Shown here in pieces: positions 139 to 58,348 of a stretch of DNA of 64,000 nucleotides. Both the position numbers and the translations under genes were made by a program. This stretch comes from Paraphysomonas bandaiensis (taxonomy: Eukaryota; Protista; Chrysophyceae), in contig CBFFRP010000150.1 of assembly GCA_965644295.1 (NCBI GenBank), positions 248,001 through 312,000 on the forward strand, in the 5' to 3' direction. The notes beneath the pieces were generated by a model. That model saw only the letters and a program-made list of their open reading frames with translations. It searched no databases and was not told the DNA's origin. Numbering within the stretch: the stretch's first letter is position 1; each line of letters begins with the position of its first letter.

Positions 139-1097
139 GCTCTCTCTCTCTGTCCAACACACTCATAACACCACTGCAGTGTCATACACACACACAGTAC
201 ACTCTACCTCCTCCTAGAAAACCCCCAGACAAACCATCTCCCCTCCCTTCGTCTCTGATACCTTGCCGTCATCTTCCTTACACACACTCTCTATGCCTCA
301 GTCTGTACCCCCCTGCACCAACACAGACACTAACAAGAGCAGCTGAGGACGTCCGAGTGTCTCCTCCAGACCATCATCATCATCACGATCATCTCGTGCA
401 TAGGTCTATCAGAGTACTCGACCTCAGTGACTCTTGTTCTGTTGCGCAGTCTCACTCTCCTCAATCAGATGTTGCCTCTCTTGCACCATCACACTCCCTC
501 TCGACTCCCTGTAGCTGGACACACCGGATGACCCTCACATCCCACCCCTGTACAGCTATACACCCTCTTGCATGTGTTCTCTACCGCTGGCTAAGACAGC
601 AAAAGAGCCGATTTCGACGCTTCTTCACAGTAGGCCATAACCTTTTGCAAGACCTTCATCCACATACCTCCGAGCCACTTGGAACAATGCCTAAAGGAAG
701 GCCACCAGATCGCCAATCTCAGAAGGGCATATTACTGTTTCCCCTAACTGCCATAAGGCTAATAAGTCAGTCCCCGTGAGGTACATAAGGCTATCTATCA
801 TATAGCGAGTGGAGTCTCATCCCAAGAGGAGACCTCCAGATCACACGCGCCGGTGAGTCCCAGGACACACGATCATGGCGAGCCTCATAACACACACTAA
901 GAACGGAAGTGGTTGCACCTTGGTGCTTGCGGCGACGCACAAGCAGCTTCTGTAGCGTTAAATAGTAGGATAAAAGAGTTTGTATTGATTAGTTACGGGT
1001 AGTAGTCTAACTAGTATGACTAGCATTCTTCTAGCCACTAATTGGTGCAGGCTTTCAACGCCTATTGCTAAATAATCAGACATTCAATATATATATG
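139..1097 (+). mobile_element. Retroelement-like 3' fragment (family 1, 'xRPPD' ORF end plus shared ~200-nt tail ending in (TA)n)
   Basis: 818-856 reads HPKRRPPDHTRR*, homologous to YPKGRPPDNTRQ* at the end of ORF 9098-9772. Tail 899-1097 is closely similar to 9813-10008 and ends ...AATAATCAGACATTCAATATATAT. 5' limit uncertain; no RT domain visible. Confidence 0.6.
903..953 (+). ncRNA. Structured RNA motif (three-way junction), copy A
   Basis: P1 ACGGAAG/CTTCTGT, P2 GCAC-CTTG-GTGC, P3 TGCG-GCGA-CGCA. Covariation with 7 other copies in the window. Confidence 0.6.
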
Positions 1098-1479
1098 ACT
1101 AAAGTACATTGTCATTGAATATACATTTATTTCCTTATTTACTTGTAAAGTGCTATGCTATTTGCTACTTCACCCCTCGTAAAGAAATTAAGGTTTCATA
1201 ATTTACGTTATTTTCCTGCTTCTCAGATTTTTGTGAAGAGCGGTATGCTTAATTTGTCAAAGAGAGAGCCAACTATCGAAAGCAAGTTAATAGTGTAAGC
1301 GTGTAAGCTATAGTGAAGGGAAAGGGGAGAGTTTATTGTTTTCTTCAGCTGCCGTTATATCGTTGAACTGAGAATTTTGTCTATCTTCGTTCAGAGTAGG
1401 AAGTAGTATGTGGTATGTGGCAGCTTGATGTTTCGATAAAAGTATATACAGTGATGTAGATCTTCTTATTAATTTTTAG

Positions 1480-1530
1480 TTCTGACTCTTACACGCCTAT
1501 TGCTAATAATCAGACATCGTAATATATACA
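1480..1530 (+). mobile_element. Severely 5'-truncated copy of the shared 3' tail
   Basis: TTCTGACTCTTACACGCCTATTGCTAATAATCAGACAT matches the tail end at 41002-41045 and 1057-1088. Confidence 0.65.
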
Positions 1531-1886
1531 ACACTTCTGCAATACCTTTTGTATGATGACTCTATCCTCTATCCTAAATGAACTGGGTTGAATGGTCTGA
1601 TTAGGTGAAATTTCGATACTAATATGGTGTGATAATATAGCTGGTGTGGTAATATAAGTGTATATTGTAATCCAGGTAAGTTCGACTGGTAAATGTAATA
1701 AAAGACTGTGGAGTTATAACAGATATGACAATTAAATATATTTACTTTTTAGTGCGACATCAACGTAACAGATGGCCACGCAATCACTGTAAACATACAC
1801 CAGGGTCACGAATGCTAACGCATAGATATATACTATGGTGTGCAAGAACCATACGTGTCATTCTGATTGAAGTAGCCTGAAGTTGC

Positions 1887-3236
1887 TTACGGACTAGAAC
1901 TAGCGGCGGCCTTAACGTGTTTAGGTTTCTGTCCCTTCTTCAAGGCCTCCATATCTTCCTTAAACTTCGAAGTGCCCATCAGAGCTTGCTCAATAGATGC
2001 AGAGCACGCCTCCATATTATGCTCGTCGCAATTATTTTGAGTAGGGTCAGTTGGAACTTCCAAAGCATTTCCCTTAGCGAGAAGAGCAAGGGTGCGCAGA
2101 ATAGGGGTATCCAATATAAAGCGCCCAACCGGCTTGTCCTGGTAGAAAGATCTGCTAAAGGTGAAAGGATTTCCAAAGAGGTCAACCAAAAAGTAAGCGA
2201 ATGGGTTGTTCACAATCATGGACTGGGGAAACATGAGACGATTGGCAGCACCAAGACTCCAGCCCTCAAAGTTACGCACTTCGTGCCACATGTACGAGGG
2301 GTTGAACATGACATCACCGGGGCCAAGTACCACTTCTGCCTTTGGAACATAACTAGGTAGGCGACGGGCAAAACCAGCAGGGACGTGCTTAGAGAATACA
2401 CCAAGTACGTAGGGAGACCACTTCGGCTCAACAAACCACCACTGCTTCCGACCACTGTACTGGAAGAATAGGTTTGCTGGCATTGCGCAGTGAAGACTAG
2501 TTCCAGTGGTGTCATCCGAGAGCTGAGGGTTACCCTTCCCAAAACCCATAAACCAATTTACAACTAAAGGATTGAATGGTTTGCCACCTTTCCAGTTTTT
2601 GAAAATTCGAGACACCTCCATGTGCTCCATAATTTCAGGATTGCGGCGAACAAATTCATCAACGTTTTGGAGATACACGTCTTTCCCGGCCAACATATCA
2701 TAGATAGCATCACCAAGCTTTACTTCCTTGGCAGAAAAAGTTCCCGTGTCATCAGTGGCGCCATACTGGCTGGCTCGCTGTGCTGCTTCTCTTTGCTTGC
2801 TCACTAGGGGGTTACGAACGGATAGGAGAGAGGTATTCCCATAACGTTCGGCAAAGTACTCAGGGTGAGACCAGGCTTCCAAACGAGAAATATTCTTTCC
2901 CATTCCACGGAAAATTACAGGATACAAAAAGTTTTTGCTCAGGACCTGCAACTTTTCGTAGCTAAAGTCATCAGGAGTCCAATCCTCTACGATCGTTAAA
3001 TCCCAAGTTAGGGGCTCAGGAATAAGCTGTGTAGCAGCCCAATCCACATAATTCACATAATTTGTAAATAATTCACTTCCTGGTTGTGATTGTGTGATGA
3101 AAACTGCTCCCAGATATAACCAAGCTGGAATAGATATGATACCGTTCCAACCCATCCATGCACACCATGGGATGATCAGTAACGTTGCAATCAGTAAGAA
3201 TTTCTTACACGCTCCCCCACTAGTATTCTTTCCCAT
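1887..3236 (-). CDS. JmjC/cupin-like (Cupin_8) 2-oxoglutarate oxygenase with N-terminal hydrophobic anchor, 449 aa, single exon
   Basis: TGTSLHC, NLFFQYSGRKQWWFV, LGPGDVMFNPSYMWHEVRN match the JmjC pattern. Confidence 0.85.
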   Translation of the reverse strand: MGKNTSGGACKKFLLIATLLIIPWCAWMGWNGIISIPAWLYLGAVFITQSQPGSELFTNYVNYVDWAATQLIPEPLTWDLTIVEDWTPDDFSYEKLQVLSKNFLYPVIFRGMGKNISRLEAWSHPEYFAERYGNTSLLSVRNPLVSKQREAAQRASQYGATDDTGTFSAKEVKLGDAIYDMLAGKDVYLQNVDEFVRRNPEIMEHMEVSRIFKNWKGGKPFNPLVVNWFMGFGKGNPQLSDDTTGTSLHCAMPANLFFQYSGRKQWWFVEPKWSPYVLGVFSKHVPAGFARRLPSYVPKAEVVLGPGDVMFNPSYMWHEVRNFEGWSLGAANRLMFPQSMIVNNPFAYFLVDLFGNPFTFSRSFYQDKPVGRFILDTPILRTLALLAKGNALEVPTDPTQNNCDEHNMEACSASIEQALMGTSKFKEDMEALKKGQKPKHVKAAASSSP

Positions 3237-3945
3237 TCTATGAATTTGTTATAAAACAATTGCTAAGGATATATACACTTATCCTAATAGATATATATGT
3301 CTATATATATGTATATCCATCGCAATGGTGTGTATATCCATATGGTGTATTGCAGTTATCTTCAACTGCCATCTGCGAACCATCCATATCCATATCGCAC
3401 TTTCCGGTACCCATCTATTGTATTCTCCTGTATATATATGTATTCCATGTAATACCCATCTAGATTCCATACTTTAGATATGGGACATATACACGTGTGT
3501 AGATACAAGACCTTCTAGATGTATTGATGTACATGTACGCCAAGCGTACAGCTATACACATACGATCCTATATACCTCATACGCATTCATCATCACATCA
3601 AGCTCTCTCATTGGCTAAAACATCTGGACACTGCCCCATACATACACATACACATACACATACAGCGTGATCTCATGCATAGAGCACACACACACTGACT
3701 CTAGATGTCTATATATATACCCATAACCACAATCTGATTAATATAAACAACTGTCTTATTGTGAAGTTCGACAGGATTACGACTAACTTTTTTATTTGAT
3801 AGTCTGTATAATTAGTTTGCGTTGTTATTATTAATTTACCCAGTTAGAACTCGTTCACTCCATCCTATTCGTGTGATTGGCTGATACATACAACATCGGT
3901 GCTATCGTGTGATAATAACACCTGTGCTGTATATAACAATCGAAT

Positions 3946-4434
3946 ATGACGGATTCAAACGGTACTGTATGTCCGAAATTGGATAATGCAGTCTTTAACT
4001 CGTATTGCCACACCGCTGACCTTTGTATGGGATGATTTTGGGGGCCGGACGCCGAGTTCTCAGCAATGATCGGCGTCATTGACGTGGTAGTGGGGTACAC
4101 AGGTGGTAAAGCTGCAGATCCTGTATATAAATCAATGAAAGACCACTCGGAAGCTGTACGAGTGTCTTTTGATCCTGGAGTTGTCGATTATGAAGAAATT
4201 CTCGAGGCGTACTTTGAGCAGCTTGGCAGCAAAATATATAGACCCTCCGCTCGTAGGCAATATAGAAGTGCTATTATGGTTCACACAATAGATCAGCGCT
4301 ACATGGCTGAAAATTTTTTGAGAGATCTGAAGTTGTTATCCGGTCGTGAAATATATGTGGATATTGAAAACGCCACAGATTTCTATCGCGCAGAGGAGTA
4401 TCATCAGAAATATTTCGCCAAGCAGTCGCGTTAG
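3946..4434 (+). CDS. msrA: Selenocysteine-containing peptide methionine sulfoxide reductase A (Sec at TGA 4033-4035), 162 aa
   Basis: Open frame from ATG 3946: MTDSNGTVCPKLDNAVFNSYCHTADLCMG-U-FWGPDAEF..GYTGG..HSEAV..QYRSAI..FYRAEEYHQKY. TGA falls exactly on the Cys of the MsrA GCFWG motif; SECIS lies ~30 nt after the TAG stop. Confidence 0.92.
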
Positions 4435-4462
4435 TCTACATAAGAATTATTGGCCAGCAGGT

Positions 4463-4520
4463 TTTATACTGAATGACGGTCATGTGCTTCATTCGAAGTG
4501 TATGACCCGAGAAGTATGAA
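4463..4520 (+). promoter_or_regulatory. Eukaryotic SECIS element in the msrA 3' UTR
   Basis: Helix I TTTATACT(4463-70)/AGTATGAA(4513-20); core ATGAC(4473-77)/CGAG(4508-11); 13-bp helix II GGTCATGTGCTTC/GAAGTGTATGACC; loop ATTC. Confidence 0.85.
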
Positions 4521-4847
4521 TCGTGTTGCCGAAATCCTGTGTACCTGGTGTTAACTATTGTATAAACTTACAAGTTTATTAAGTATGTGCGGATTAATAA
4601 ATTATAGAACTTTTTATCTTTTTAAGACTAGAAATAAATTTACGTCAATCGACAATTCGGCCAGGACATAATCACTTGAATGTATCACTAACAGGAAAGC
4701 AACAGGTTCCCTCTTCCGAGTGCATTTTCTATTACGATGTTTGAAAGTATATAGCTTACTATGAATTACAGGTACAGTTACAATATTGAGTCGGAGGTTT
4801 CAAGAAGGCAATCTCTTACCCAACTTAAAATATGTTTAAATATATTA

Positions 4848-6326
4848 TTATAATCTCGTCAATACCATGCACACTGTATAGAAAGTAAAGAAGGCAACCA
4901 TAAGCATAATAGGTTCTGCTATCATTCTGGAGCGTCTAAATTCATAGGATACTCTGATCTCCTTGTTATGTTCCTCGATAATGTTTTTCGCTTTTATAAT
5001 AAGCACTGGACGACCTCCGTTCAATTCTGAATCCAGAAACGTATATCTGGAAGATCGTTAAAAACATGCATCAACTATCTCAATAGTCAGTACCTTATGC
5101 TGGTCGACTGCTCAATGGGGTACGGTGAATCAACTCTAATATCGAAGCTACCCTCCGGCAGAATGATTTTTGTTTCCATATCCTCTGCCCACGCCCCTTC
5201 AAACCCTGCGAAGAAGCTAAAACGTAGGATATACCGACCATTTGCATCAATTGCGAGGATGCTTTCAGTCGGCAAAGAGTATCCGATGTAGAACTCGGTC
5301 TGCCAGCCTCCAAACATTGGGAAGCGCGTCTCGATGTCAAGCGCAATACTTGATTTAAGAGTTTGGATGCTTGAGCTTGAGATGTTACCTATCTGATCCC
5401 TACGCAGTGCTTAAACGAGGGGTTGGCAGCAACTGGTGTTCTCACCTATAGTATATACTGTGCGCCTCGCGCGGAAGCTTCGTACGCAATGACCGGAAGG
5501 ATGGAGAGACAGATGACGCATGTTGATAATCAAACCGAGAGAAGCCTCCACTGAGCTTAGCTCCTGCATGTGTGAGGTCATATGTCTCCTCCACAGCAAC
5601 GTTCCCCCAGTGCGACACTTCGATCTCTCGACCCACTTCTGTTAGCTTCATAAAAGGCTTGTTGTTCATATAGTGAACTGTAAGAGGAAAATTCTACGCA
5701 AATACTATGAATAATAGTATCGTCTGCTTTAGACACAATACCTGTAAGGGTCCAATTTCCTGAAAGGGACCATATACGAGACTTGATCCTCTGTGCGAAT
5801 AGGGTTCAGCTTTGGTAAACGACTCGACCGACGCACTCGCAAGCTTCACGATAGTTTTTTGTTTCTCCGTATGATAAGGAGATGTAAAATAAACATTTTC
5901 CTTGAACAAAACCTTTTGATTATCATTCTGGGAAATTTCTCTGGGGTACTGTTCGAGAATGTCAGTAAATATAGCCACAAATTTAAATATAGCTTCAGTC
6001 TCATTTAGTGTCAGAGTAAAGAACGTGTAGTGCCCATCCCTAACAACTTGTAAGATTAAACATTAATATATTATCAAAGATTACGTTTGTGGTTCAGATA
6101 GAGGAATTTCCTGGCCTTTCATGGACGCTGTCAACATACTTAAGCGGTATGCAAGACGATCAGGAAAACATATCTTATATTCATCTTTAATATTCTTTGC
6201 TTTAATATCTACAGTCATTTTAAGCATTGCATTTGAAACATCTAGATGTCTTTGAACATCACTATTAATAGATGCTCTAGCAGCTACTAATATAATAGAG
6301 ATGTACAACAAATACAAGAATATCAT
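4848..6326 (-). CDS. RPN1: Ribophorin I / oligosaccharyltransferase subunit 1, 5 exons (6326-6085, 6039-5742, 5693-5446, 5399-5094, 5046-4848)
   Basis: REIEVSHWGNVAVEE, GFSRFDYQ, YYRDQIGNISSS, RFPMFGGWQTEF, YTFLD..GRPV, signal peptide and C-terminal TM. GT-AG introns of 45-48 nt join the frames. Confidence 0.93.
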
Positions 6327-6572
6327 ATGAATACAGTAGTAACTGATATTAAAATAAGTTAATTTCTGTTCTATATATGAACTATGATGTCTTGGGAAAA
6401 TGTATAGTTATGGGGATGACAGTTCAGTAGAGTTATCTTAGTTATGGATGCAGCAAGATGAGATCTAAAGCAAGAGCGGGATTGAATAATGAACCACACT
6501 GCTGCCGTATGAACAATAGAGGCAGACACATGTACTGGTCGATAATGTACTTCTGTACCTACATAGATACTG

Positions 6573-6776
6573 TACATACATACATACATACATACATACA
6601 TACATACATACATACATACATACATACATACATACATACATACATACATACATACATACATACATACATACATACATACATACATACATACATACATACA
6701 TACATACATACATACATACATACATACATACATACATACATACATACTGTACATACATACATACATACATACATAC
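6573..6776. repeat. (TACA)n microsatellite between divergent RPN1 and permease genes
   Basis: About 50 near-perfect tetramer units. Confidence 0.97.
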
Positions 6777-6848
6777 GTATCTTGGGGGTTCTTCGTATCA
6801 TGGTGTGTATCTCTGCTATCTATCTGTATATTCTTCCACAATCATACC

Positions 6849-8418
6849 ATGACTCTAATAGACCACAATACATCTACCACTTCAGTATCTGGCAATCAAC
6901 TTAAACGTACCCTTGGATTCTATGATGGTTTATGTGTTATAGTAAGTGTTATTATCGGTAGCGGTATATTTGCATCACCAGGAGCAGCTCTTGATAGAAG
7001 TGGTTCACCTGCATCAGCTATTATTGTATGGGCTATATCTGGTAGGGAAGATATGTATTCTCTGTATATTAGATTGATTTTTATATATAGGAGTGTTATC
7101 TATAGCTGCAGCATTATGTTATGCTGAATTGGGTGCAATGCTACCAACAACTGGAGGAGATTTTGTTTATTTACGTCGTGCTTATGGGAAAACAGCTGCT
7201 TTTTCTTTTGTATGGTTTAATTTTTGGGTTGCTCAACCGGGTTCACAGGCTATTATCGCCACAGTGTTTGGTAATTATATTGTAACACTCTTCACTGGAT
7301 TGGATCAGACAACATCGAATTCGACTCCAAGTAAGGCTGCTGCTGTGCTAATTATTGCAGTTCTTGTTGGAGTTAACTGTGGCGGTGTGCGGGAATCGTC
7401 AATGCTTAACAAAACCCTTACCGCTGCCAAGGTAGTTATGCTCTTGTGTGTAATTGCCGCGGGTGTTGTGTATGGATGTAGCCATGGATCTACAGCAAGG
7501 TATGTGTATGCGATTATGTTACAACTCTTCCAATATTTATATGAAAGGAATAATTTGTCGCCATCAACGTCGTTTGATGATACTGATGCTTCCGGATTTG
7601 GTCCCGCTATGAATGCATGCCTCTGGGCTTATAGTGGGTGGCAGTCGCTCAACTTTTTAGCGGAAGAGGTGATTGACTTTGAGCGACGCTTATCTCGAAT
7701 AATTATATTTGGTATGGCGATCGTCACCTCACTTTATGTCATGGCAAACATTGCTTTTCTTTCGGTTCTAGATTCTGAATCCATGACGGACTCCGACGCT
7801 ATAGCGATAGATTTCGGTAAGATGATATCGGGAAGTGCATTTGGTGGTTTCTTTGCTTTAGGCGTAGCGCTGTCCACCGCAGGCACTCTCCATGGATCGA
7901 TACTTGTAGGATCTCGAGCTCTATTTGCAGCTGCAAGGGCTGGGCAGCTTCATAGTGCTCTCGCTGAACTCAACTCTTTTGGGTCTCCGTGGGTTGCTCT
8001 CTTAATCCAAGGCATCTGGTCAATTGTTCTTGTGTTGCTACCGGGCTCTGACTTTTCCTCGCTCATAGATTATACTGGCCCCGCTACTTGGTTGTATTAC
8101 GCCTTTACAGGTAGTACCATATTTTACTTCCGGCTCTATGAAAAAGACTTGCACCGCCCTTACTCACTTCCCTGGTTTCCTTTCCCACCTGTCCTTCTGA
8201 TTGTGCTCTCCGCTTTCGTAGTCATCAGTAGCCTCATTAGAGAACCTTTGTATTGTGGCCTTGCATTTGTTTTTGTTGCTACATCTGTTCCCGTCTGGTG
8301 GTTACTTTCGAGATATGATGTCAAGGGATTAACAGCTGACAAGATTGAAGCTCCCATTACATGTGAGCATGAAGCACCAGTTGCCAATGCTTTGAGACCC
8401 CCTGATGTAGAACTGTAG
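6849..8418 (+). CDS. APC-superfamily amino acid permease (LAT/SLC7-like), 3 exons (introns 7042-7090, 7500-7547)
   Basis: LKRTLG..IIGSGIFASP, ALCYAELGAMLPTTGGDFVYLRRAYG, WAYSGW, RPYSLP; multiple TM helices. Confidence 0.92.
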
Positions 8419-8730
8419 AGGATACTACAGCTCTTCTATGCTCGAAAATTTTAGCATCAGATAAAGTATTGTTGTCCTGGTATTTGTTGAGTAGAAGTGC
8501 GTTATCATCGCTATATATGTTACCACATATATAATACGCTCTATATGCAAATTCTGTCATTGTTGATATGTATGTAACGGTAGTTGCTTGTGCTATTGCA
8601 ATGAAACATTATACGAAGAAATAATGTGTATATTTATATCTGCATGTATTGTCGTGTGACATGTACCATGGGTTGTATTGCGTTTTAATAGTGAAGTTCA
8701 GGAATTTTGAATAATAATTGATATGATATT

Positions 8731-10140
8731 GAATGTCTTATTATTTGCAATAGGCGTTAAAAACCTGCACCAACTTAGTAGCTAGATGAATGCTAGACAA
8801 AAACTAGCTAGACCTCTACCTGTAACTAATCAGTACACACTTTTTTATCCTACTATTTAACGCTGCGGTAGCTGCTTGTGCGTCGCCGCAAGCACCAAGG
8901 TGCGACCACTTCCGCTCTGAGTCCTTAAGGTGAACATCCCGGATGCTTGACTTCAGCAGGCAGCCCAATACCCCTTGAGGTGGGCCCATTCCCGGATGCC
9001 TGTTTATTCGTCAGGGCCCAAAGACGTCTACACAAGTGACACTTATTGGTGCTAGGGGTCTGCATTTCACAGCCACAAAAACGCGCTCCTAGAAGAAATG
9101 AGAAATCCGGAACTACCCCAATGGACCACCACTGTACTCCAGCGACTCTCCAGCAGGGCCTGGAACCCTTCCGTGCCACAGGTGGAGAGATTCTGGACGG
9201 GTACCATCACAATGACACAGCTTGAAATGGTTTTTGGAGATCACATCCATGAATCACTGACGTCCCAAGGACTGCGCAGCATCGAATCAGCGATCATCAA
9301 ATTACTGCTACCGCTTTTCGCTGCAGCAAAGCTCATGATCCAAGATCGCGGAAGAAGATACGTGACCCTACGGAAAGGCCCCCCAAGGCTACTACCGCGG
9401 CCGAGTCCAAAACACAGACAGAAACGGAAACGCCCAAGGGTGCTAAGATTACTAGGAATCCACAGACGAACCGAGACTGGAACACCGCCCACCGCATCTA
9501 TGAACCCTACCAACTATACACAAAGGACCATAGCACCGGACCGTATGAAACCAACAAGCCCTAGACAAAGGCGACGACGTCTCCGGCAACCCCTCCTCTG
9601 CCCAACGCCCAAACGGTACATGGCGACACCGCCACATTCCACCACACCATCAACCTCTCAGTCCACGCATCTAGTGCTCGGTACACTCAGGACCTTAATA
9701 CAGAACCCGGTACCTCAGAGCCAGGCGGAACCGTATCCCAAGGGGAGACCCCCGGACAACACGCGCCAGTGAGTCCTCAGATACACGAGCAGGGCGAACT
9801 CACACACAACATCAAGAACGGAAGTGGTTGCACCTTGGTGCTTGCGGCGACGCACAAGCAGCTTCTGTAGCGTTAAATAGTAGGATAATAGAATTTGTGC
9901 TGATTAGTTATGGGTAGAGGCTTACTAGTAGACTAGTATTCAACTAGCCGCTATATCGGAACGAGTTTTTAACGCCTATTGCTAAATAAAAAGACATTCA
10001 ATATATATGTACCACACAAGCATTCGGTTATGAGTGGACAGAAGAATATCTGCTGACTATGTTTGCGGCTCACGTTAGTTTCCCAGAGAGAATCTCTCCG
10101 GTACTTATCCCCCAGAACACCACGACAAGGTGCGAGTCCG
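8731..10140 (-). mobile_element. Family-2 repeat with the shared 3' tail (8731-~9052 plus 10009-~10140), split by a nested family-1 insertion
   Basis: 8731-8925 is the reverse complement of the shared tail. 8925-9045 matches 11194-11312 and the reverse complement of 40777-40900. 10009-10135 matches the reverse complement of 40650-40776. Confidence 0.65.
9053..10008 (+). mobile_element. Family-1 retroelement-like 3' fragment (ORF 9098-9772 ending PKGRPPDNTRQ, then shared tail and (TA)n)
   Basis: The 224-aa ORF end and tail are homologous to 818-1097. It sits in opposite orientation inside the family-2 copy. Confidence 0.65.
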
Positions 10141-10693
10141 ACTTTGTTGAGGGTATGATATGATGTGATATGATAATATGATATAAAAAGAGTGATATAT
10201 CATAGCTCTTATTAGCTACTCTTTACTGTACTATCGAAGCATCCCACCACGCATTCTACTATATTTCTTGTTCTCGATGTACTCACTGCTTCCCCCTCCT
10301 CCCTTGCTGCACGTTGTTGTGTGCGTACCCCAGAGAAAAACACTTCAGCCAGCATGTGGTACGTGGACAGCACGACAGCACTCATGACTCGTCAGCGCCT
10401 ATAGGTGACTCTTATACAACAATAATTACCGAAAAAAACCCTCGTATTCTACTGGTGTTCAATTATGTTTCCTCTTTCATGTTTGTTCTGCTACTGGCTA
10501 AGACGGTAAAACAACCAATTCCGTCGCTTCCCCACAGCAACTTGAGGCCACCATATTTTTCAAACTCAGAAGGGTATATTGCTATATTTCTGCATGTATG
10601 TACCCAGATTGTAGTAGTAGATTTATATCACTGCCTTTACTGCTGTACTGCTGTGCATCGTACCCTACGTGTATCTATTATGAATAATTTTGA

Positions 10694-10733
10694 GAGAATT
10701 GTACCTTGGTGCTTACGGCGACGCACAATTCTC
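10694..10733 (+). ncRNA. Diverged copy D of the three-way-junction motif
   Basis: GAGAATTG..CAATTCTC closing stem replaces GGAAG/CTTC; CTTG and GCGA loops are retained. Confidence 0.55.
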
Positions 10734-11030
10734 GTAACTTTAAACGGGATTTATTATTCAACCTAATAAATTTAGTGTAAAATCCTAGTCAATTGGTTAA
10801 AAAACCTAGTCATTTATTTATTAATATTTCATATTTTCAAATTGAAATGAGTAGGTTGATTAGTAGTGTAACTATAGAAGTTGACTCTAGTAGGTGTTTA
10901 TGGTATTGACCCTTATAATAGTCACAAACTCAAACATGGGAGCATGCTCTAGCCATCAATTAATAAAAGCAGATATTGTGTACATGCTATACATCACACT
11001 TCAGCTTTACATTCCATTGAGAATTAGTAG

Positions 11031-41138: not shown

Positions 41139-41294
41139 GTCCTAGCTTGCCAGCGTAGTGAGTTTGGCTTTTTGGGTATCAAGTGATCAAGTACTACGCA
41201 TGTGTAATGAATAATACTTACATATGTCCGGTTTAAATTATTGATGTGACGCTATATCTAACAATCAGGGCAAGGTAAAAATATATTGGAACAA

Positions 41295-41440
41295 GGGATG
41301 GTTGCACCAAGGTGCTTATACAGCAATGCACAAGCAGTCCCGAGACAACCGAGTATTTAGCAACTCTGCTACCACTAGTCTAAAGTCGTCGTAGATAGCT
41401 AAACATAGTAGTTCTCTCATGTAATAATCAGATCTTTATA
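41295..41440 (+). mobile_element. Divergent tail subfamily with motif copy G (41295-41341); inverted end fragment at ~41665-41698
   Basis: GGGA..TCCC stem with CAAG and GCAA loops; ends TCTCATGTAATAATCAGA; reverse-complement end at 41672-41696. Confidence 0.55.
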
Positions 41441-41895
41441 TAAATATATTGGATTGCAATATATATATTGCAATATGAATATTGCAATTACTTCGGTTTG
41501 CTTGCTACAACATATATATATACATTTATTATTACTTTTGTTAGATAACGACATAATTAGTAGTTGAACTTAGTAAGAGAGTTTAGATAAAACTGACTGT
41601 AAGCTGAAAATTATAAATTATATGAGATATCATTCTTCATTCATTATCATTCACTATAACTAATTCTATAGAAATGTCTGACTATTACATGAGAACGGTT
41701 GTATCTAGAATTTGTAATGTAGCTATGGACTTAATAACATGAGTTATAATACGGCTATAAATAACGGTTATAATTCAAATATCTTACAAACTACAGCTTT
41801 AAATTGCTCACAAACAGCAAAACTCAACAATTTTAGCAAAATTTGGCCTTGAAATATTATATTCCAATATATTTATATATAATGCTCATGCTTGT

Positions 41896-47302: not shown

Positions 47303-47459
47303 TACCATATACTATACATACGTATAGCAACAGGTTGGGGATGTGCTGTACATAACCATAACTAGCTATTAACCATATCCCACATAACTCATACAAATAA
47401 TTCTATTTATTGAATATATTTAATTAATTCTTGTCTCTAAATCAAACCCTATTCTAATC

Positions 47460-48212
47460 ATGTCTAAATTGGTTCTTATATGTATGAGTAGTTTGATTGT
47501 TCAAGCGGCTGCATTGCTATGTGACAATCTCTCTCTATCTGATGACCTTCCTTGCACTGAAGTCCCTCGTTGTAATGGTCAACAATATGCTCATATTACT
47601 GTTGATCAACTATCTAATGGATACGGTGACTCGAAGTCTTATTCGGATATATCTTTATGTTTTGATGACGATAGATTATATGTGAACCATGTTGCCCACA
47701 AGCAGGTATTCTTAACTCCCACGAGTTACACCCAGTGCAATGATCCTGTCTTCAATTCTAATGTCGGTGAGTTTTTCGTTGCTCCGTATATGGAATCAGA
47801 GCCCCATTGTTACAATGAGCTGGATATCTCTCCATTTAATGTCATGTTTGACGCTGGAATATACAATCCTAACTTGAATCGTTCTGGTATTGTGGGTTCA
47901 GAATTTGAATGCTCATCAAGCGGAATTACTAACTCCGTTGTACAAGACAGTGAGAATGAGACCTGGAGTGCGTCCATGTCGTTCCCTTTTTCTCTATTGA
48001 ATTGTCCCTTCAACTGCCCCTTGAAACAATACTGTGGGCATTCCACTCCAAACAATATCTACAGAGCAAATTTTTTCCGCATCAATGAGCTTGTGGAAAC
48101 AGCTTCCTGCACTTCATCGACATGTGAATATATGGCTTGGAGCCCAACTATGGTCGATCCCCCAGCTTTTCATGAACCCACTAAGTTCGGGTACCTTTTA
48201 TTGCAGCTTTAA
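47460..48212 (+). CDS. Secreted CBM9-like/DOMON-like carbohydrate-binding protein, 250 aa, intronless
   Basis: Signal peptide; GEFFVAP..YNELDISPFN, YRANFFRI, WSPT..PPAFHEPTKFGYLLL. Confidence 0.78.
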   Translation: MSKLVLICMSSLIVQAAALLCDNLSLSDDLPCTEVPRCNGQQYAHITVDQLSNGYGDSKSYSDISLCFDDDRLYVNHVAHKQVFLTPTSYTQCNDPVFNSNVGEFFVAPYMESEPHCYNELDISPFNVMFDAGIYNPNLNRSGIVGSEFECSSSGITNSVVQDSENETWSASMSFPFSLLNCPFNCPLKQYCGHSTPNNIYRANFFRINELVETASCTSSTCEYMAWSPTMVDPPAFHEPTKFGYLLLQL

Positions 48213-48927: not shown

Positions 48928-50289
48928 TTATGGATTGGATACTACTTTGCACTGCACAGCTACTACTCTGCAAGTGGTCGCGGCACCATTGGGCATAGCA
49001 TCAGATACAACAACTCGGGTTTTGCCCATACCAAAACGGTGACATATAAGGCCCCATAACGAATTTGTAGTATAGCACAAATAAAGCCAGTCACTGTACC
49101 AATCTTCTCGCACACTCTTCTGTTGCACCAGAAGCATTAGGTTGTAGAAGCCCTGAAAAGCGATGGTTATCACGAAAATAAAAAGGCACTGGCGATTTAC
49201 TACATGCGGAAATAGCTCACCTGCATGCGTAATAGCAGAATCCCTACGGCAATTAGTTCACTAGGCGGGACGGAACTAGTGGAGCAAAATTGCCATACTC
49301 GGGCGATTGTCATAAACAGAAAAGAGAACTGTATTAAAAAATGACCACAATATATGACAAAAAGAAGCGAGACATTCAACAGAGGTGTGATACTGTAGGC
49401 AAAATGTAAACAACGAAATATATACTTATACCATAAGTCTGCCCATACCATATACACCACTGGGTAGTACATTAACTTATTGGCCATGAGGCGTAGACTG
49501 CCACTTCTTGTAGTAAACTCAGTCTCGGTGTGTAGTGAGGGGTCAACAACAGGAAGAGCTGGTTCACTGCAGTCAGTGTCAATAGTTGATGTACTTGGCT
49601 TCATCGGGCCATTTTGGACGTCACTGGCCAATAAAAGTAGCTGCAGGTACATCAATTATTATTAAGTACAAGATATCACAAACTTACTCTGTACCGCACT
49701 ACCAAGTACGAAAGCAGTATGTATACAAACATAACCCACGCAAGGCCGTAATAAAGTGCGAGCCTCTCCACGCTTCCAGATGTTTTCGCATCTGAAATCC
49801 AGCACCACCCCTCATTTACTTTGTCATAGTCCCCTATATCACTATCAATGACATTTTAGAAAGTTAGAGAGTACTAGCACCAGTAAAAAAAGGTATCAAT
49901 CCAGCTGGTACCGATATTGACCACACGAAGAGGTGATATCTGTAAATATCGCCTTCTGGTTTATACTGAGTTATAGACTTATCAGCAATGGACATCCTGA
50001 GTAATATATAGCTTATAACAACAGCCCATAGCAGGCCGGAGGATCCAAAAAATTGAATTGCAAATGCTTGTAGTAAGCAAGACCATTCCTGATGTGCAGG
50101 TAGTGCAACAACACCTAAGCTATCTAGACAAGCACAAGTTGTTTGAATGACAATTAATTGTCGAGACAATGAACGTTGCCAATGTGGATATCGATAATAA
50201 CTTATCAAAACTACAGTACCTGCCAAGCCTCCTATACAAGAGCCCACATAGCTGGCTATGAATACAGCTGTAGGACTTTGTAACGACAT
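48928..50289 (-). CDS. cAMP-receptor-like (CAR/GCR1-type) 7TM GPCR, 5 exons
   Basis: CLLQAFAIQFFG, YHLFVWSI, GWCWIS, LMYYPVVYMFSFLFMTIARVWQF, QGFYN; introns 49880-49834, 49687-49641, 49448-49329 and ~49220-49153. Confidence 0.8.
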
Positions 50290-50989
50290 GACACTATATA
50301 TTAACAAACTCGTGATGTCATCATACTGATTCACAGATCATCAAGATATATTACCACTCAATGTGTGTGGATATAATCTACTAGAGGATGTTAACTTGGA
50401 GCTTAAAGGGACTGCTTGTGGGCTAGAAGACATGCATATGATCGACATCGTCAGGCGGTAGATGGGAGGAGTGTGGGAAAATCATTATACATAACTTTCC
50501 ATGTGAAAAATCACCGATATTTGCTATTTTGAAGACAAAAAACTATAATATACTATAAAAATAAGTAAAATATTGTCAGTCTAGTTCCTACAAAAACGGA
50601 AATTTGAAACCGCACTTCTAGACCTGGAGTTGTTCCATGTCCGTTTTATTCGGTATAGTACGGTATATTACGGTATTCTTTAAAAATGAAATATAGCCAC
50701 ACAGCAACTGTTCTGACGGCTGGCATGGAATAAGAGAATCATAGTGTGAAGGGTATACTGTGTACGTATGTGCTGTATATTAGGCATGATGTACGCATAG
50801 TTGTTATGTATGTATATGTATGTATAGCAGTATACCATATATGTATAGCTGTATGTATATGTATGTACTGTATGTATGTATATGTAAAGCATCACCATCC
50901 CACATATGCTCCATTCCAAACCGACCATATAGATCCAATACCTCTTATAGTAGGATACCATTCATTAGTTTACATAAATCTGCATTAGA

Positions 50990-52517
50990 ATGAGCCTGAT
51001 TGCAAAGACTATCGTCCAGAGATGTGCTCCGTTAAGATCGGTAGAGTGTATATATATACACACATCTCTATAATTAACAGCCACATATATACACAGGTTG
51101 CCACTACTGGAAGTCGAAGATTTCTTAATGTCCATGAATATGCCAGTATGGAAATAATGAGAGGATTTGACATTCCAGTGCCTAAGAGTAAGGTAGCTCA
51201 CTCAGCTGAAGAGGCGGGTGAGGTCTATCGTCAAGTTATTGGAGAGGGGAACGATTGTGTTATTAAGGCAATGGTGCTGACTGGTGGAAGAGGTTTGGGT
51301 CATTTTGATTCCGGGTTAAAGGGTGGTGTACATTTATGCAGTTCACCTGATGAAGTTGTTGATTACTCAAAGAAAATGCTCGGAAGTAATTTGATAACGA
51401 AACAAACGACTGCTGCTGGTCTACCCTGCAACAAGGTCATGCTTGCCGAACGCATGTATCTGCGTCGTGAAATGTATCTTTCAATAATGCTTGATCGTGC
51501 GGCTGGTGGGCCAATCTTTGTGGTGTCTCCTGCGGGTGGAACTTCTATTGAGGATGTTGCAGAGGCTACACCTGAGCTAATATTCAAACAACCCGTTGAC
51601 ATTGCCGCGGGAATTACTAGCGAACAAACTGAGTACATTGCTAACTCTCTGGGATTCAAGAAAGGAACTCCTGGGCATTCAAAGTGCCAGGATGTTGTCA
51701 CTAAGCTGTACCAGCTCTTCCGCGAGAAGGACTGTACTTTACTTGAAATCAATCCCCTTGCAGAGACACCAGATGGGCGTGTGCTTGTCTGTGACGCCAA
51801 AATTAACTTCGATGATAATGCGGAGTTCAGACAGAATGAGGTGTTCTCTTACCGTGACAGAAGCCAGGAAGATTTCAGAGAAGTGGAAGTGAGTGCGTGC
51901 AGTTACTGACCACTCATTGTTTTGACGTTTATATGTAGGCTGCCAAGTATGATCTTAACTACATTGGTCTTACCGGTAATATTGGGTGCATGGTTAACGG
52001 TGCCGGGCTTGCCATGTCTACTATGGATATTATAAAGCTGAAGGGAGGCGACCCGGCTAACTTCTTGGATGTGGGCGGAGGTGCCACTGAAGAACAGGTG
52101 CAGAAAGCATTTGAGCTCCTCAATGCAGACAAGAGCGTCAAGGCGATATTCGTCAATATATTCGGTGGAATCATGAAGTGAGTACCCTTTCGATATCACT
52201 TGGATGACTGTAGCTGATATGTTTCTTATTTAGGTGCGATATTATTGCTCAAGGAGTTCTCAATGCAGCGAGAAACATCGGCTTGAAGAAGCCTGTGATA
52301 ATCCGACTCAAAGGTACAAATGTGGAAGCCGCCAAGAAACTCATTCAGGTTAATATATATTGACTATTGTTATTTTCTAATATAACGTACTCAGAACTCG
52401 GAATTGAAAATGATCGTTTCCGATGACTTCGCTGATGCCGCTGAGAAGGCTGTAAAAGTTGCTGACATTGTCAAGTATGCTGAAGCCGTAAATTTACATG
52501 TAGAGTTTGAGGAATAA
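50990..52517 (+). CDS. Mitochondrial succinyl-CoA ligase beta subunit, 5 exons
   Basis: [74 protein letters not shown]. Confidence 0.96.
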
Positions 52518-53264
52518 GTTGATCGTATTATGGTGCTAAAATGTTTGTGTAATTACATTTAATAAGCATCTAATGTCTAATTGCTAAAGTTACCCTCATC
52601 ACATCTTCAACTGCATTTGCATTCCGCAGGTGTCTATGAAATATTAAAGCGCAAAAACATGAGGGCCTCCAATCGATGAGGTGCCATGGATTCGCCTACA
52701 TCACACATGATTTTGATTTTTGCTCTGCCGAAAAGCCTTTCTACACAATTAGTAATGGAGTAAATATGCTTTAAGCAGCGTACTTAGTTGGTTTCGTCGT
52801 GCGTAGTGCGTAGTCGCTTTTGTTCTTTGTGCGCTTGGTGACTTCTCACTTCTCATCAGTGAGTCGACACCATCATCGTCTTTTTCTTCTTCTTCATCAG
52901 TTTTGCTTGAGCTGCGCCTTCTCAGGTCGAGTGAGAGTGTCCTCCAAACCGCTTTGGACGTTCATACTACTTATACATATCTTAAAACTAGAAGGGTATT
53001 GAACACAACATTTACGCCATGAAGTAAGGTCAAGAGGAAAGAAACGTATTCGACCGTACAAACAAACAGCACCTTTCAGAATGTAATATAATGACCAATA
53101 TATTAAAACAGAGACGATAATATCAGGAGGAAGACCTTGGTTACAGATAGCAGTGGTGTAGCAATGAATAATAATCAGTAATGGTGATTGCTATTAAGGG
53201 CAATAAATGGTTATCGTCCTAAATCTTTCCAAGTTCTAATCCTAATATGTTCTTATACAAAATA

Positions 53265-53389
53265 GCAAATAATTGCCAATTAATTGCAACCTTTCTACGA
53301 GCAATTAATTCGCAATTATTACGTATATTCCATGCAATTTAATTGCAATTACAACTAATTGCAATTCAATTAATTGTTGCGAAGCCCTG
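53265..53389 (-). mobile_element. hAT-like MITE end relic (related end at ~17350-17437)
   Basis: Reverse complement begins CAGGGCTTCGCAACAATTAATTG, followed by AATTGCAA repeats. Confidence 0.5.
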
Positions 53390-54005
53390 GTAGTGTGTAT
53401 TAATATATTCAAAACTGAGTTCAATTTCTCAAATTGAAAAAGCTTTCAATGATAGAGTAAAAAGTGCAGCTTTAATAAACTCTGATAAAAGAACAAAAAA
53501 GTTTGGGAAGAGTAATACATGTAGTGCATACCACTGTCAATTTAGCAGCTACTGTGAGGAATTAAGATTCACTAAGTAGTCAGTGCTCAACCCCTCCAAC
53601 AGCCATACATTAGCTGCCAACATTTCTTGCCCAACTGTCCCTTTATCGAAACGGGTTATTATTATTTACTGTGGTCTTCATTTCTATTATTGCTAAATTG
53701 AAAATCAACAACTAATTGATACGCAATACACAACCATGAAAGTTGCATCCAGCCAGGTGCTTGACAAGTTGCATCGCTATTTACTATTTACAATCTAACT
53801 ATGTACCGTATTACCGTATTGGCAGGAATAATACGTATAGCATCAACTAATTGCTCCATGATAAAGCAATAATATCATTACGAACTAGGAAGCACATTAA
53901 TATTCATTACAGCGATACTCGTTGCCGTAGTAGTAGGGTACAACCCAAATGAGCATAAAACCTATCCCGACAGCACAAATTCAGACAAAACCAGAAGAAT
54001 ATATA

Positions 54006-55001
54006 CTACAAGTCTACTTTGTATATGCACCCGGTCGACCTCTCAGTGATGTATAAATAGTTGCCACTGTATACAGTAATCGTAACTTAGTGTATATACA
54101 TGTGAAAGATACGTACTTAATTGCGAGGCCGCTTAGTTCGGGACCGGCAACAGTTATATTAGACTGAATCTGGCCTGTAGGTGATATGACAAACACTCGG
54201 CCCTCTTGAGCTCCATCTGAAATGCGAATTCACACGATTACATTCAAATATGAGATTAACTGCATGAAAGTCGTCACCTGCAACATCGTACTGTGCAACG
54301 TATAGAGTGCCATTTTTGTCACACACGATTGAACAAGGGCCAACTCCACCACTCAATTGACAAAATACGCTTCCATTATATACACCAGCAGGTTTTTCAA
54401 AGTATCGTAATATACGATTCGTCATCTGCTCCGCTACATAACTGCCGAATACACGAAATTATCATGTTAATAACAGACAATACTAGAATAGTTACATAAA
54501 TTTTCCGTTCGGTGATGTGGCGATTCCTGATGGATATGCAAGGCTTTCAAGTGATATTGGTTTAAGGATTTGTCCAGATGAAGAATTGGTGATAACAAAA
54601 AGACTACCAATGGGGCGGTCCAGCCCAGTTTCACCGAAAGGTCCGCTATCTGTGAAAAATAGATTTCCATGTGCATCGTTAATAATGGTACTCGGGCCTT
54701 TCAATGGCTTATCTTCGTAAACGCCAACAACAATAGATTGACCACCATCATTATGTACCGCAAGAACAGCGCCGTGAGCATAATCAGTAATATAAAGCGT
54801 GCCATCTCTGTCAAACACCGCTCCACTGGGTTGACCATGGGTCATATGTACCCGCTCAACCTTTTCCAATTCATTAACCATCATAACCTCACCAGACGAC
54901 TGGTAGAGAAAATGTAAATTTCTATTGTCGTCAAAGAAAGGACAGCAGATGTCATTGGATAAATTCTGTATAAACGGCTTTGCTCTAACAGAATTCAGCA
55001 T
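54006..55001 (-). CDS. SMP-30/gluconolactonase/LRE (SGL) family six-bladed beta-propeller, 4 exons; start uncertain
   Basis: GQPSGAVFDRDGTLYITD, PLKGP..GNLFFTDSG, LAYPSGIATSPNG, ends NYLYITERSTGCIYKVDL*. Confidence 0.83.
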
Positions 55002-55251
55002 TTCTTCCGTCAAAAGATGACCCTTCAAAGCCAAAAAAAATACTTAAAGGTAGAATATATATTGAGTCTGGTTGTCAACGCTGGTTAGCTCTAATACAGC
55101 ACTATATGATGCAACAGCATCAGCCTTGAATTGCGCTTGTGGAGAAAGATACATACATAGGCGTATATATGCACACCACCACTACAGCCCAAAGAAAAAA
55201 TGAAACGTTTTTTTTTCACAAGCAACAACAGTTATCGTACCTGTATACCAC

Positions 55252-55631
55252 TACATACGTACATACATACATACATACATACATACATACATACATACAT
55301 ACATACATACATACATACATACATACATACATACATACATACATACATACATACATACATACATACATACATACATACATACATACATACATACATACAT
55401 ACATACATTCATACATACATACATACATACATACATACATACATACATACATACATACATACATACATACATACATACATACATACATACATACATACAT
55501 ACATACATACATACATACATACATACATACATACATACATACATACATACATACATACATACATACATACATACATACATACATACATACATACATACAT
55601 ACATACATACATACATACATACATACATACA
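55252..55631. repeat. (TACA)n microsatellite, ~380 bp, between divergent SGL and FG-GAP genes
   Basis: About 95 near-perfect units. Confidence 0.97.
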
Positions 55632-55745
55632 CAGGGCCACAAAGTAGTATGGATGGTATATTAAACATCTTCTTCTCCTGCACACTTCACTATGTACTTC
55701 ATGTAAACTTCATATCTTCTCTACCAATCACATCACATCACAAAT

Positions 55746-57442
55746 ATGATCCATCCATTCCTCGTATATTACCTCTCTGTATTCATACTGTGTATGGTTC
55801 ATATCACACACGCTAATCCTCTTCTACGTCGCTCATTATCATCATATGGATTTATTGCATCCGCTGTACATGAAATACATCCACGAGAGGCTATATCTCA
55901 TCATTGGTTTGGCTCATCTGTCCATCTGTCAGATAAAACAGCCATAGTAGGGGCTCCAGGAGACAGTGACTATAACAAATATGGGGCAGCGTATATATAC
56001 AGAAAAACAAGTGGACACTGGAAGGAGATTAGAAAGTTAACCCCATCTACCCCAGTAGTTGATGATGGATTTGGGTCTGCAGTGTCTATATATGATAATT
56101 ATGCTATTGTAGGAGCCTATAGGTATGTGATTTATATCCACTCCAGAGTGTGTGTATGTATGTATGTATGCATGTATGTATATGTCTGTATGTGTGTGTA
56201 TGTATGTGCATATGTATGTATGTGTGTATGTATGTTCATATGTAAGGGTATATGTGATGTAGAGATGATGCTAATGGTGAAGACTCTGGAAGTGTGTACT
56301 ACTTTTCTGGGGATGAGAACTGGGCTCAGATTCAAAAGATTGTTCCCTCGGATGGTGTGTCATTGGATTACTTCGGCAGTAGTGTTTCACAATATCGCCG
56401 GGAGGAGCTGATCGTAGGTGCATGGGGTGTTGATTATGGTAGCTACACGTCTTGTGGTGCTGCGTATTTCTACCGCTTCGGGAACTCTGTATGGAACCTG
56501 GAGGAGAAGATGTTACCGGCTGATATTCACAGTTATCAGTGGTTCGGCATCAGCGTGGCGATCTACCAAAGTAAGGCTGCTGTAGGTGCATGGGGTGACA
56601 ATGAAGGGGGGTCTGTAAGCGGCGCGGTGTATACCTACGACCACTCTATGGGAAACTGGCACAAGATTCAAAAGTTCTCCACCGGTGTTGCAGGGAACCA
56701 CATGGGGTATGCAGTGAGCATGCACGAGGATGTACTTGCTGTAGGGCTCCCAAACTCATACCGAACAACTATGGGAACCACTAACAACCCAAATGCCTAC
56801 CGGACGGGTATGGTGAAGATATTCCGACTGCGTGACTACAATCATTGGGAGCTCGAGCAGAATGTTGTGTGCTCTGACTGTGAAAACTTGGTCTCATTTG
56901 GACAAAGCGTCTCGGCTTCTTCTGACAAAGTGGTGATCGGTCGTCACGGCGCAGCAACAGTATGGACTTTAGATGCTTCTCAGGCAGTAGGGTACAGGTG
57001 GAGCCAAGAAGTATCACTCACAAGTGGAGATAGTGCAGCTGATGACTCTTATTTCTTTGGTTCCGCAGTTGCTATAGATGGCGGAAATGTGCTCATTGGC
57101 GTCAAAGATAGCGATATGCGCACTCACTCATCTGGAGATGCATACATTCGTGTTGAAGAAGCGGGGGTGGCTGTTTTATTCGAGAGCCCACGCAACAACT
57201 CGTCCAATAGATATTTTTACGAAGAAAACCTGAAACTTTACGTTGGGCTGTACATTATGATCGTGTTAGGAATCGCTGTTGTGTTAGTGGCACCTTTAGT
57301 AATATTTGGATATCATATGTATACTGAAGACAAAGACACAGCGAAGATCTTGGAGATGAAACCATTTATCAAAGCCTCAGCTCAAAGAAGTGATTCTTAC
57401 CAAGGACTTAAAAAGAATTCGATTGAACGGTCGAAGCCTTAA
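55746..57442 (+). CDS. FG-GAP-repeat beta-propeller type I membrane protein (integrin-alpha-like head), 2 exons (intron 56123-56262)
   Basis: Signal peptide; seven FGxSV..xVGA-type repeats; TM LYVGLYIMIVLGIAVVLVAPLVIFGY; short cytoplasmic tail. Confidence 0.87.
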
Positions 57443-57849
57443 TATATGATAGTTAGTATAAATAAAATGACATTGTTGTACGCATCTATAGCCAATATGT
57501 ATTTTACGCAGGAGCTAGGATTACTCTAATAACAAGTAGCTGTATGTGTGTATATTTTCAAGTATGCTATTACTATGTGTGATCCTGTTTGTATTGGCTT
57601 AACAACACATTGCACTTTCGGTCTGGGCACAAGAGAAATAGTAGTACATATAAATATAGGTAGTAACTATCACTAGTGAAATAAGGAAGTCCTGTGAAAA
57701 AGTTCAAAAGGTAGTTCATTAAATAGTTTATAAGGTAGTTCAAAAATGTGAGATTTCTGAAATGTTCAAAATGTAGTTCACAAGGTTGATTCATTGTTGC
57801 TTGATCTACCTTATGAACTACATTTGAAATTGAGCAAACTACCTTGTTA

Positions 57850-58348
57850 ACTTCTTTTAATCTTTCTTTTGAGTTGCTCTATTTCACTAGTGTATGTAAA
57901 TATGACGCAAGAGTCTCACGAAATAAGATATTATTGCTCACGCCCCGCGCCATCTCCAGACATGCTGGAGCCCCAACAATCCACCCTCTCGCGAATGTAT
58001 CCCAGGTTAGGAACACTCGACTTACTACTTCGGAATTCAGAATACTGTGTCTTTTCAAAAGTCCTGCAGAGCAGTACGTCAAGGGACGCCCCTCCTGACT
58101 AAAAATTCACGTGCACTTCAAGGACTCACATCCATAGAGAGCCCCTCCCTCGCATACAAGAACGGAAGTGGTCGCACCCTGGTGCTTGCAGCGACACACA
58201 AGCAGCTTTCTTAGCGTTATGAAGTAGGATGTGAGAATTTGTACTAGTTAGTGACAGGTAGAAGGTAGACGTCTATCTAGCTCGACTAGTTTACATCTAG
58301 CTACTAATCTGGTTCTGATTCTCGACACCTATTGCTAATAATAAGACT
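57850..58348 (+). mobile_element. Decayed family-1-like fragment with shared tail (motif copy H at 58164-58210)
   Basis: AAGGGACGCCCCTCCTGACTAA is KGRPPD* with a 1-nt frameshift; tail 58158-58348 ends CCTATTGCTAATAATAAGAC. 5' limit uncertain. Confidence 0.6.

Follow-up and report, generated by a model that had tools for sequence, protein, structure and literature searches.

In stringent long interspersed nuclear elements (LINEs) the protein encoded by the second open reading frame (ORF2) binds a stem-loop in the 3' tail of the element's RNA, and short interspersed nuclear elements (SINEs) that bear the same tail are mobilised as well (PMC4176376, PMC1636434, PMC3747384). The present analysis concerns a 64-kb stretch of the Paraphysomonas bandaiensis genome (G000:C150:248001-312000 in an assembly of 62.5 Mb; hereafter the window), which contains eight copies of a motif of about 50 nt predicted to fold as a three-way junction with a closing stem (P1) and two hairpins, P2 with a CNNG loop and P3 with a GNRA loop. 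Abundant and structured, the motif is a genuine RNA element, but it does not represent a new class of RNA; it is probably the element by which a reverse transcriptase (RT) recognises the shared tail of a stringent-type LINE/SINE system. It shares several features with the eel pair UnaL2/UnaSINE1 and with zebrafish ZfL2-1 and ZfL2-2 (PMC1636434, PMC4176376; reviewed in PMC3747384): the 3' tail of a LINE encoding an apurinic/apyrimidinic endonuclease (APE) and an RT is shared with non-coding partners, it has a defined 3' end without poly(A) and a conserved stem and loop upstream of the terminal nucleotides, and cognate tails differ between sister LINE families. The systems differ in that a single stem-loop is found there, whereas the tail here, of 130-200 nt, has a three-way junction and a second long hairpin, for which protein binding is predicted. 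The elements here are also without obvious short terminal tandem repeats, have one very large open reading frame (ORF), reside in a marine protist, and include a class that consists of the tail alone.

Two further systems bear comparison. In R2 a multi-helix RNA in the 3' untranslated region (UTR) is bound by the element protein to start target-primed reverse transcription (TPRT) (PMC11194090, PMC3414825), and non-autonomous derivatives of R2, the short internally deleted elements (SIDEs), have lost all but a processing module at the 5' end and the part of the 3' end that binds the RT (PMC3414825). The elements described here likewise have a multi-helix 3' UTR and non-autonomous derivatives, and their tail may be bound by protein. 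R2, however, has a restriction-like endonuclease and is site-specific, whereas the present elements encode an APE, occur scattered through the genome between target-site duplications (TSDs) that vary, and show no sequence or Rfam similarity to R2. The L1Tc/NARTc pair of trypanosomes, with its Pr77 / hepatitis delta virus (HDV)-like ribozyme head (PMC3185411, PMC3383444), also combines an autonomous LINE with an abundant, short, non-autonomous partner that has a fixed 5' head, and that partner, like the SIDEs, preserves a processing head at 5' and an RT-binding end at 3' (PMC3383444); but the hallmark shared in that pair is the 5' end, whereas the shared part examined here is the 3' tail.

All eight motif copies of the original prediction were verified, each at its predicted place and on its predicted strand (Table 1). 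A covariance model (R1) built from 30 distinct copies with P1, P2 and P3, including in its seed all eight copies from the window, was run unfiltered over the whole window and returned exactly the same eight (45-94 bits, E <= 5e-11) and no ninth. A pattern match at 47552 was rejected as a chance match and not a copy of the motif. Genome-wide, the 34-nt core was found at least 1742 times with three or fewer mismatches, against none for the reversed control, so the motif is a high-copy interspersed repeat and not a chance pattern. A separate lineage, lineage 2, accounts for 181 copies within three mismatches of a 40-mer, 60 of them exact; a lineage-2 52-mer that spans both strands of P1 has 40 exact copies, and 67 within two mismatches.

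The link between the tail and its parent LINEs was established from the coordinates of domain matches relative to those of the tails. Family 1 is defined by RVT_1 matches of 882 nt, found on eight contigs (C11, C15, C25, C28, C80, C143, C146 and C231) at 2.35-2.4 kb upstream of a canonical tail and in the same orientation as that tail. Family 2 is defined by a second RT type (834 nt), whose distance upstream of the lineage-2 tails is about 2.3 kb (C566, C644, C661, C505 twice, and C637). Matches to Exo_endo_phos lie about 1.4 kb upstream of the RTs of both families, and in intact copies APE and RT occupy a single open frame, the figures for which reach 3021-3731 aa. The order APE, RT, tail is found with constant strand and spacing at no fewer than 13 loci, in both families. 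A frame that reaches the edge of the DNA examined, and so is at least 481 aa long, is present at several loci, with its stop codon about 55 nt before the motif. No Pfam domain was found in the last 446-481 aa of the LINE frame; relatives of this C-terminal region among public proteins place it downstream of an RT domain, and one of them (P0066) has a weak APE match, then an RT, then a region of the LINE C-terminal type. The Pfam RNase_H domain has only two matches in the genome (G000:C419:118837-119154 and C89:22430-22819), neither of them at any LINE locus identified. The parent element and its enzyme, for which the original prediction advised a search, have been found: two related families of very large single-ORF APE+RT retrotransposons without long terminal repeats carry the tail. 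The 5' truncation points of the LINE copies are scattered over 47 to more than 1493 nt, and TSDs of 8-16 nt flank the insertions; taken with the lack of poly(A), these TSDs and truncations fit TPRT.

Alignment of copies together with their flanks showed that the motif forms the first 50 nt or so of the 3' tail. The tail is conserved at its two ends, namely the motif and a 3'-terminal box (TAATAATCAGAC.TTCA.TA) common to all lineages, lineage 2 included, while its middle varies by tail type: the type-I tail extends about 140 nt past the motif, and the type-II (B2) and lineage-2 tails are shorter. The 3' ends of the elements are fixed, reading ...TTCAATA(T) or ...TTCACTA(C) and followed directly by the TSD, and no poly(A) was present at the element 3' ends in this alignment. 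Upstream of the motif lie unrelated classes of sequence, either coding bodies, a non-coding body (body B), a variant of it (B2), or, in tail-only copies, nothing; homology between the LINE, B and B2 elements begins at one point, AGA(A/G)CGG. It had been proposed that the motif stands just after the stop codon of an ORF and about 150 nt from a fixed 3' end. The first of these holds for LINE-type copies only, in which the stop precedes the motif by 46 nt (copy at 9818) or 124 nt (copy at 903), the copies at 8865, 11109 and 40909 being non-coding and that at 41295 tail-only; the second is true of the type-I tail, but the other tail types are shorter and the copy at 10694 has no recognisable 3' box.

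Some tails are arranged in unusual ways. Tandem partial tails, or duplicated 3'-terminal boxes, occur right after a complete tail at three loci (L004:1484-1800; L026, about 1680-1720; L006, about 2560-2625), which suggests template jumping or re-initiation by the RT. At L029:1440-1500 the end of a lineage-2 tail (...TGTAATAATCAGATCTTTAGTAT) directly adjoins a family-1 tail truncated inside P1; either the two form a chimera, or one element was inserted where another ends. About 70 nt 3' of a LINE tail (L001, about 1760-1800), in the interior of a contig, there is a short telomere-like run, (CCCTAA)n.

The minimum free energy fold of the canonical copy is a three-way junction of -19.3 kcal/mol, with a P1 of 8 bp, a short junction helix, P2 (GCAC-CUUG-GUGC) and P3 (UGCG-GCGA-CGCA); the pair probabilities are 0.97 for P1, 0.88 for P2 and 0.76-0.97 for P3. 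Pairing of TTG with CAA at the junction, as originally drawn, is not borne out, since it gives -15.2 against -19.3 kcal/mol and has a pair probability of 0.02-0.08. Applied to 14 full tails, RNAalifold recovered the same junction together with a long second hairpin (columns 69-208) that contains several compensatory pairs, among them those at columns 97-181 (A-U in nine, G-C in five) and 106-174 (G-C in six, A-U in six).

Transposon copies are related by descent and, once inserted, undergo neutral decay; weight was therefore given only to variants that had propagated. Every one of the eight P1 pairs is double-changed among 49 distinct copies, a result above all 500 shuffles and all slid registers; P2 and P3 have one double-changed pair each. 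When lineage 2 is aligned with family 1 in a common register, three neighbouring pairs of P1 are seen to be exchanged (G-C to A-U, A-U to G-C, A-U to G-C), the closing pair of P3 goes from G-C to A-U (with the G-U intermediate in one copy), and the loops go from CUUG to CAAG in P2 and from GCGA to GCAA in P3, while the 30-odd core bases between the switched pairs are identical. A third lineage has CAUG and GCGA loops. Within family 1 the double change GGAGG/CCUCC is present in four copies and each of the single changes in one, and a C-G pair of P2 is replaced by U-A in a single copy (L042:5839). A U-to-C variant that recurs in LINE-type and body-B copies disrupts the third pair of the junction in 10 of the 49 copies. 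P1 is kept by compensatory change, then, but the evidence of this kind is weak for P2 and P3.

These comparisons bear on two earlier claims. The loops were said always to be CNNG and GNRA, which is correct for all eight copies in the window and for the propagated lineages (CUUG, CAAG and CAUG; GCGA, GCAA and GUGA), although one decayed copy elsewhere has GUGG; as to the variety of loops claimed, CCTG and GTAA occur in one copy each, those at 58164 and 40909. That the closing stem covaries is upheld by the double changes in P1, but one of the examples offered, GAGAATTG/CAATTCTC, comes from the copy at 10694, the sole occurrence in the genome within three mismatches. It represents decay and not a lineage, because L020:768-837, which has a similar downstream tail of the same type, retains the normal arrangement.

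Four of the five defining features of a stringent-type tail are present: a position in the 3' UTR of an APE+RT LINE, sharing by TSD-flanked partners, a defined end lacking poly(A), and a structure kept by compensatory change in P1. Among the functions suggested in the original prediction, an RT-recognition signal in a shared mobile-element tail fits all of these data. The tail consists of three parts, namely the junction (P1, CNNG-capped P2 and GNRA-capped P3), the long irregular hairpin and the single-stranded 3'-terminal box. The LINE protein would bind the junction, whether in the LINE's transcript or in any other RNA with the tail, and would nick the target DNA, and reverse transcription would start at the defined, non-polyadenylated 3' end in the "stringent" LINE/SINE mode. 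From this correspondence we infer both the binding of the LINE protein and the requirement for the motif in mobility. The other suggestion involving a linked enzyme, that of an RNA-guide scaffold, finds no support: the enzyme domains linked to the motif are APE and RT, not RuvC or HUH.

Several observations weigh against this assignment. The canonical fold is no more stable than that of shuffled sequence (z = -0.7, with single-copy values from -0.7 to +1.3), so thermodynamic stability alone supports nothing. Covariation is silent on P2, on the junction and on most of P3, which do not vary, and because the copies share descent the independent compensatory events are few. For the full tail and for the U15C lineage, folding predicts an alternative structure that lacks P2. 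A cause other than RT binding could lie behind the strict conservation of the core. Finally, two metagenome scans with the invariant core revealed no homologue beyond this genome: the first pattern had no match and a looser one had a single match (L052), which was set aside as chance, being in a bacterial-looking coding region and without the P3 pairing. There is accordingly no outside lineage with which to deepen the covariation.

Searches of Rfam 15 gave no match at the gathering score across the window, and at positions 860-1110 none at E <= 10 among its families, self-cleaving ribozymes included. The view that the motif belongs to no known family is right as regards its sequence but not as regards the kind of element, which is a shared LINE/SINE tail. 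Public RNA runs that contain the stretch take the form of assembled contigs, and these show coverage and not the ends of RNAs. Parts of the repeats are covered by contigs of two marine metatranscriptome studies and by those of runs bearing the organism's label, and the elements are therefore represented in RNA libraries; summed contig depth peaks in the 100-nt bin that bears the motif, and is zero on the unique spacer at 10217-10923. The run labels, together with a sub-threshold match to a diatom-pyrenoid domain, point to a marine protist; a protein-atlas comparison of the aldehyde dehydrogenase yielded no informative taxon.

Three non-autonomous kinds of element have copied the LINE tail: body-B elements of about 500 nt with a fixed head, B2 variants, and bare tails. 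Full-length body-B elements (L015, L027, L028, L029 and L042) measure 483-622 nt from CCCTCAACAAAG... to the end of the tail, and are flanked by TSDs of 8-15 nt. The head has 1025 copies in the genome, and its start (CCCTCAACAAAGTCGG...) is flush with the TSD, a further example being L015:1169-1260. At three loci with full-length body B, searched against Rfam, the head had no tRNA, 5S, signal recognition particle (SRP)/7SL or HDV-family match at E <= 1, and the only matches were chance ones resembling microRNAs, on AT-rich palindromes. Because the head matches no tRNA, 5S or 7SL model, body B can be called SINE-like only in the loose sense that it is short, non-coding and shares the tail. By eye, helices can be placed in the head in HDV-like order (P1, CCCUCA/UGGGGG; P2; P3, 3 bp; P4, 8 bp), with an ambiguous P1.1, but this is a hand-drawn fold, with no Rfam HDV-family match at E <= 1. 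One of the body-B elements in the window is interrupted by a LINE fragment on the opposite strand (Table 1), and this nesting is confirmed by contigs of other B copies, which jump over positions from about 9051 to 10008.

The tail-only copies provide a different kind of evidence. In six TSD-flanked insertions of this class (about 150-200 nt), which represent three lineages, the 5' end is no more than 4 nt from the P1 base: L014 and L024 (family 1b), L028, L008 and L047:8062-8131 (family 1c/d), and the window copy at 41295 (lineage 2); those of L014, L024, L028 and L008 are at the centres of the loci. Per 100 nt, the background amounts to about 1 truncation point ahead of the motif and about 4 within the tail, and the five family-1 ends that fall in a single 6-nt bin represent an excess of roughly 20-fold or more, in a sample of about 60 copies of which half were chosen for a perfect core. 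In lineage 2, copies that are otherwise perfect differ only in the 1-4 nt before GGGAU. As natural deletion mutants, the tail-only units suggest that the junction and the remaining tail are enough for copying. The clustering of their 5' ends suggests that RNA or cDNA acquires a discrete terminus where the junction begins, which could result from blocked decay (through structure or a bound protein), from RNA processing, or from stopping of the RT.

It is tempting to go further and to suggest that the junction, besides serving as the RT handle, defines the 5' end of an RNA, and that the resulting tail RNA of about 190 nt is the minimal mobile unit and, via template switching, a building block of SINE-like elements; but this extension is offered only tentatively, and is rather unlikely to hold in full. 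A related proposal, to which the same modest weight may be given, is that the junction mainly sets an RNA boundary, acting (by its structure or through a protein bound to it) as a stop to 5'-to-3' decay, or as a processing site, and so yields a tail RNA of about 190 nt that is itself reverse-transcribed, a role compatible with RT recognition. The six tail-only starts, the excess of family-1 ends in one bin, the narrow variation ahead of GGGAU in lineage 2 and the common starting point of LINE/B/B2 homology at AGA(A/G)CGG all speak for a boundary of this sort. The hotspot could stem, however, from RT stopping or from joining at microhomology, the sample is small and partly selected, and the RNA data are in the form of contigs. 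Flaviviruses have a compact three-way junction where the 3' UTR begins, the exoribonuclease-resistant RNA (xrRNA), which sets the discrete 5' end of a shorter RNA. The likeness of the motif to xrRNA is one of analogy only, there being no sequence similarity and no evidence of a ring-forming pseudoknot.

The same boundary at the base of P1, the compact three-way junction and the invariant core might be thought to indicate a new ribozyme, a possibility raised in the original prediction, which would here cleave itself at its 5' edge; but this now appears very improbable. No Rfam ribozyme family matches at E <= 10, and the junction strands are without a hammerhead-type core. Most LINE and body-B copies are contiguous across the site, so that any cleavage is at best partial, and to sever the tail from the coding RNA would harm the LINE. 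Somewhat less remote, though still improbable, is a conformational switch in which P2 and a UGCU/AGCA extension of P3 exclude one another, each state having a function of its own. The competing helix is 99% paired, and yet invariant; its fold is less stable than that of the junction by only about 3 kcal/mol, and becomes the favoured one in the full tail and in the U15C lineage, a copy of which has pair probabilities of 0.6 for the alternative helix and 0.27 for P2. Neither energy nor covariation separates P2 from this helix, because the folds are so close and both sets of bases are invariant. Nothing, on the other hand, sets a switch apart from a single fold with sequence-specific protein contacts, and the loop that varies (CUUG, CAAG, CAUG) between invariant complementary 4-mers, together with the single U-A replacement, inclines the balance towards P2 as a real hairpin. 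It might finally be argued that the motif has no function, and that its apparent conservation comes from young copies and shared descent: most copies are near-identical, and related sequences can beat shuffle controls even where there is no structure. This, too, is hardly credible, because the core is identical between two LINE families that differ in P1, in the remaining tail and in the type of RT, the changes flanking the core are compensatory, and the decayed copies at 58164 and 10694 display what neutral drift does to the motif. Recognition by the RT of the LINE is accordingly retained as the best explanation.

The motif copies of the window and the elements in which they lie are listed in Table 1. 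In old copies (window 58164-58210; L043:3661-3730 and others) P1 and P3 have decayed mostly by CpG-type transitions, CG becoming TG or CA, which is consistent with cytosine methylation of repeats. The window also contains long (CATA)n microsatellites at 6477-6840 and 55140-55680, and a 42-nt tandem repeat at 1-154 that gives rise to spurious ORFs.

Table 1. Motif copies and associated features in the window
Feature	Position	Strand	Description
Copy 1, canonical	903..953	+	In 5'-truncated family-1 LINE fragment, ~25 to ~1090; 879 nt of LINE homology upstream
Tail of copy 1	about 901-1090	+	Ends ...GACATTCAATA
Remainder of type-I tail	954..1090	+	Long irregular hairpin domain with compensatory pairs, then single-stranded 3'-terminal box (AAATAATCAGACATTCAATA)
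Open frame of copy 1	3-776	+	Stop 124 nt ahead of motif
Copy 2, U15C variant	8865..8915	-	P1 GCGG.../...CCGC; inside full-length non-coding body-B element
Body-B element of copy 2	8727-10153	-	Head at ~10153, 3' end at 8727, TSD TCATATCA; split by nested LINE fragment
Body-B 5' head	10040..10153	-	CCCTCAACAAAGTCGGACTCGCACC...; directly adjoins TSD
Nested 5'-truncated LINE fragment	9052-10004	+	Opposite strand to host body-B element; carries copy 3
Copy 3, canonical	9818..9868	+	In 5'-truncated family-1 LINE fragment, ~9052-10004; 764 nt of LINE homology
Open frame of copy 3	9098-9772	+	Stop 46 nt ahead of motif
Copy 4, old and decayed	10694..10733	+	Internal deletions; different tail type; 45 bits; no recognisable 3' box
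Copy 5, GUGA loop	11109..11158	-	P1 GCGAAAG/CUUUCGU; in non-coding B2 element with short type-II tail, 3' end ~11027
Copy 6, GUAA loop	40909..40960	+	A-rich P1; in diverged body-B-like element, type-II tail ending ...CAGACATTCACTA at ~41051
Copy 7, lineage 2	41295-41341	+	Slightly decayed; within tail-only insertion 41291..41441
Tail-only unit, ~150 nt	41291..41441	+	TSD AAATATATTGGA on flanks; 5' end 4 nt before GGGAU
Copy 8, old, LINE-type	58164..58210	+	P3 broken by two CpG-type transitions; P2 loop CCUG; no longer folds

For the annotation of this organism's genome, the elements described here amount to several thousand repeats for masking. The tail-only copies outline the minimal mobile unit, and the system as a whole is a clean, high-copy, non-animal example of a LINE that marks its own RNA. 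With two sister LINE families that have cognate variants of the junction, and some 1000 hitch-hiking elements, the specificity of that recognition becomes directly testable.

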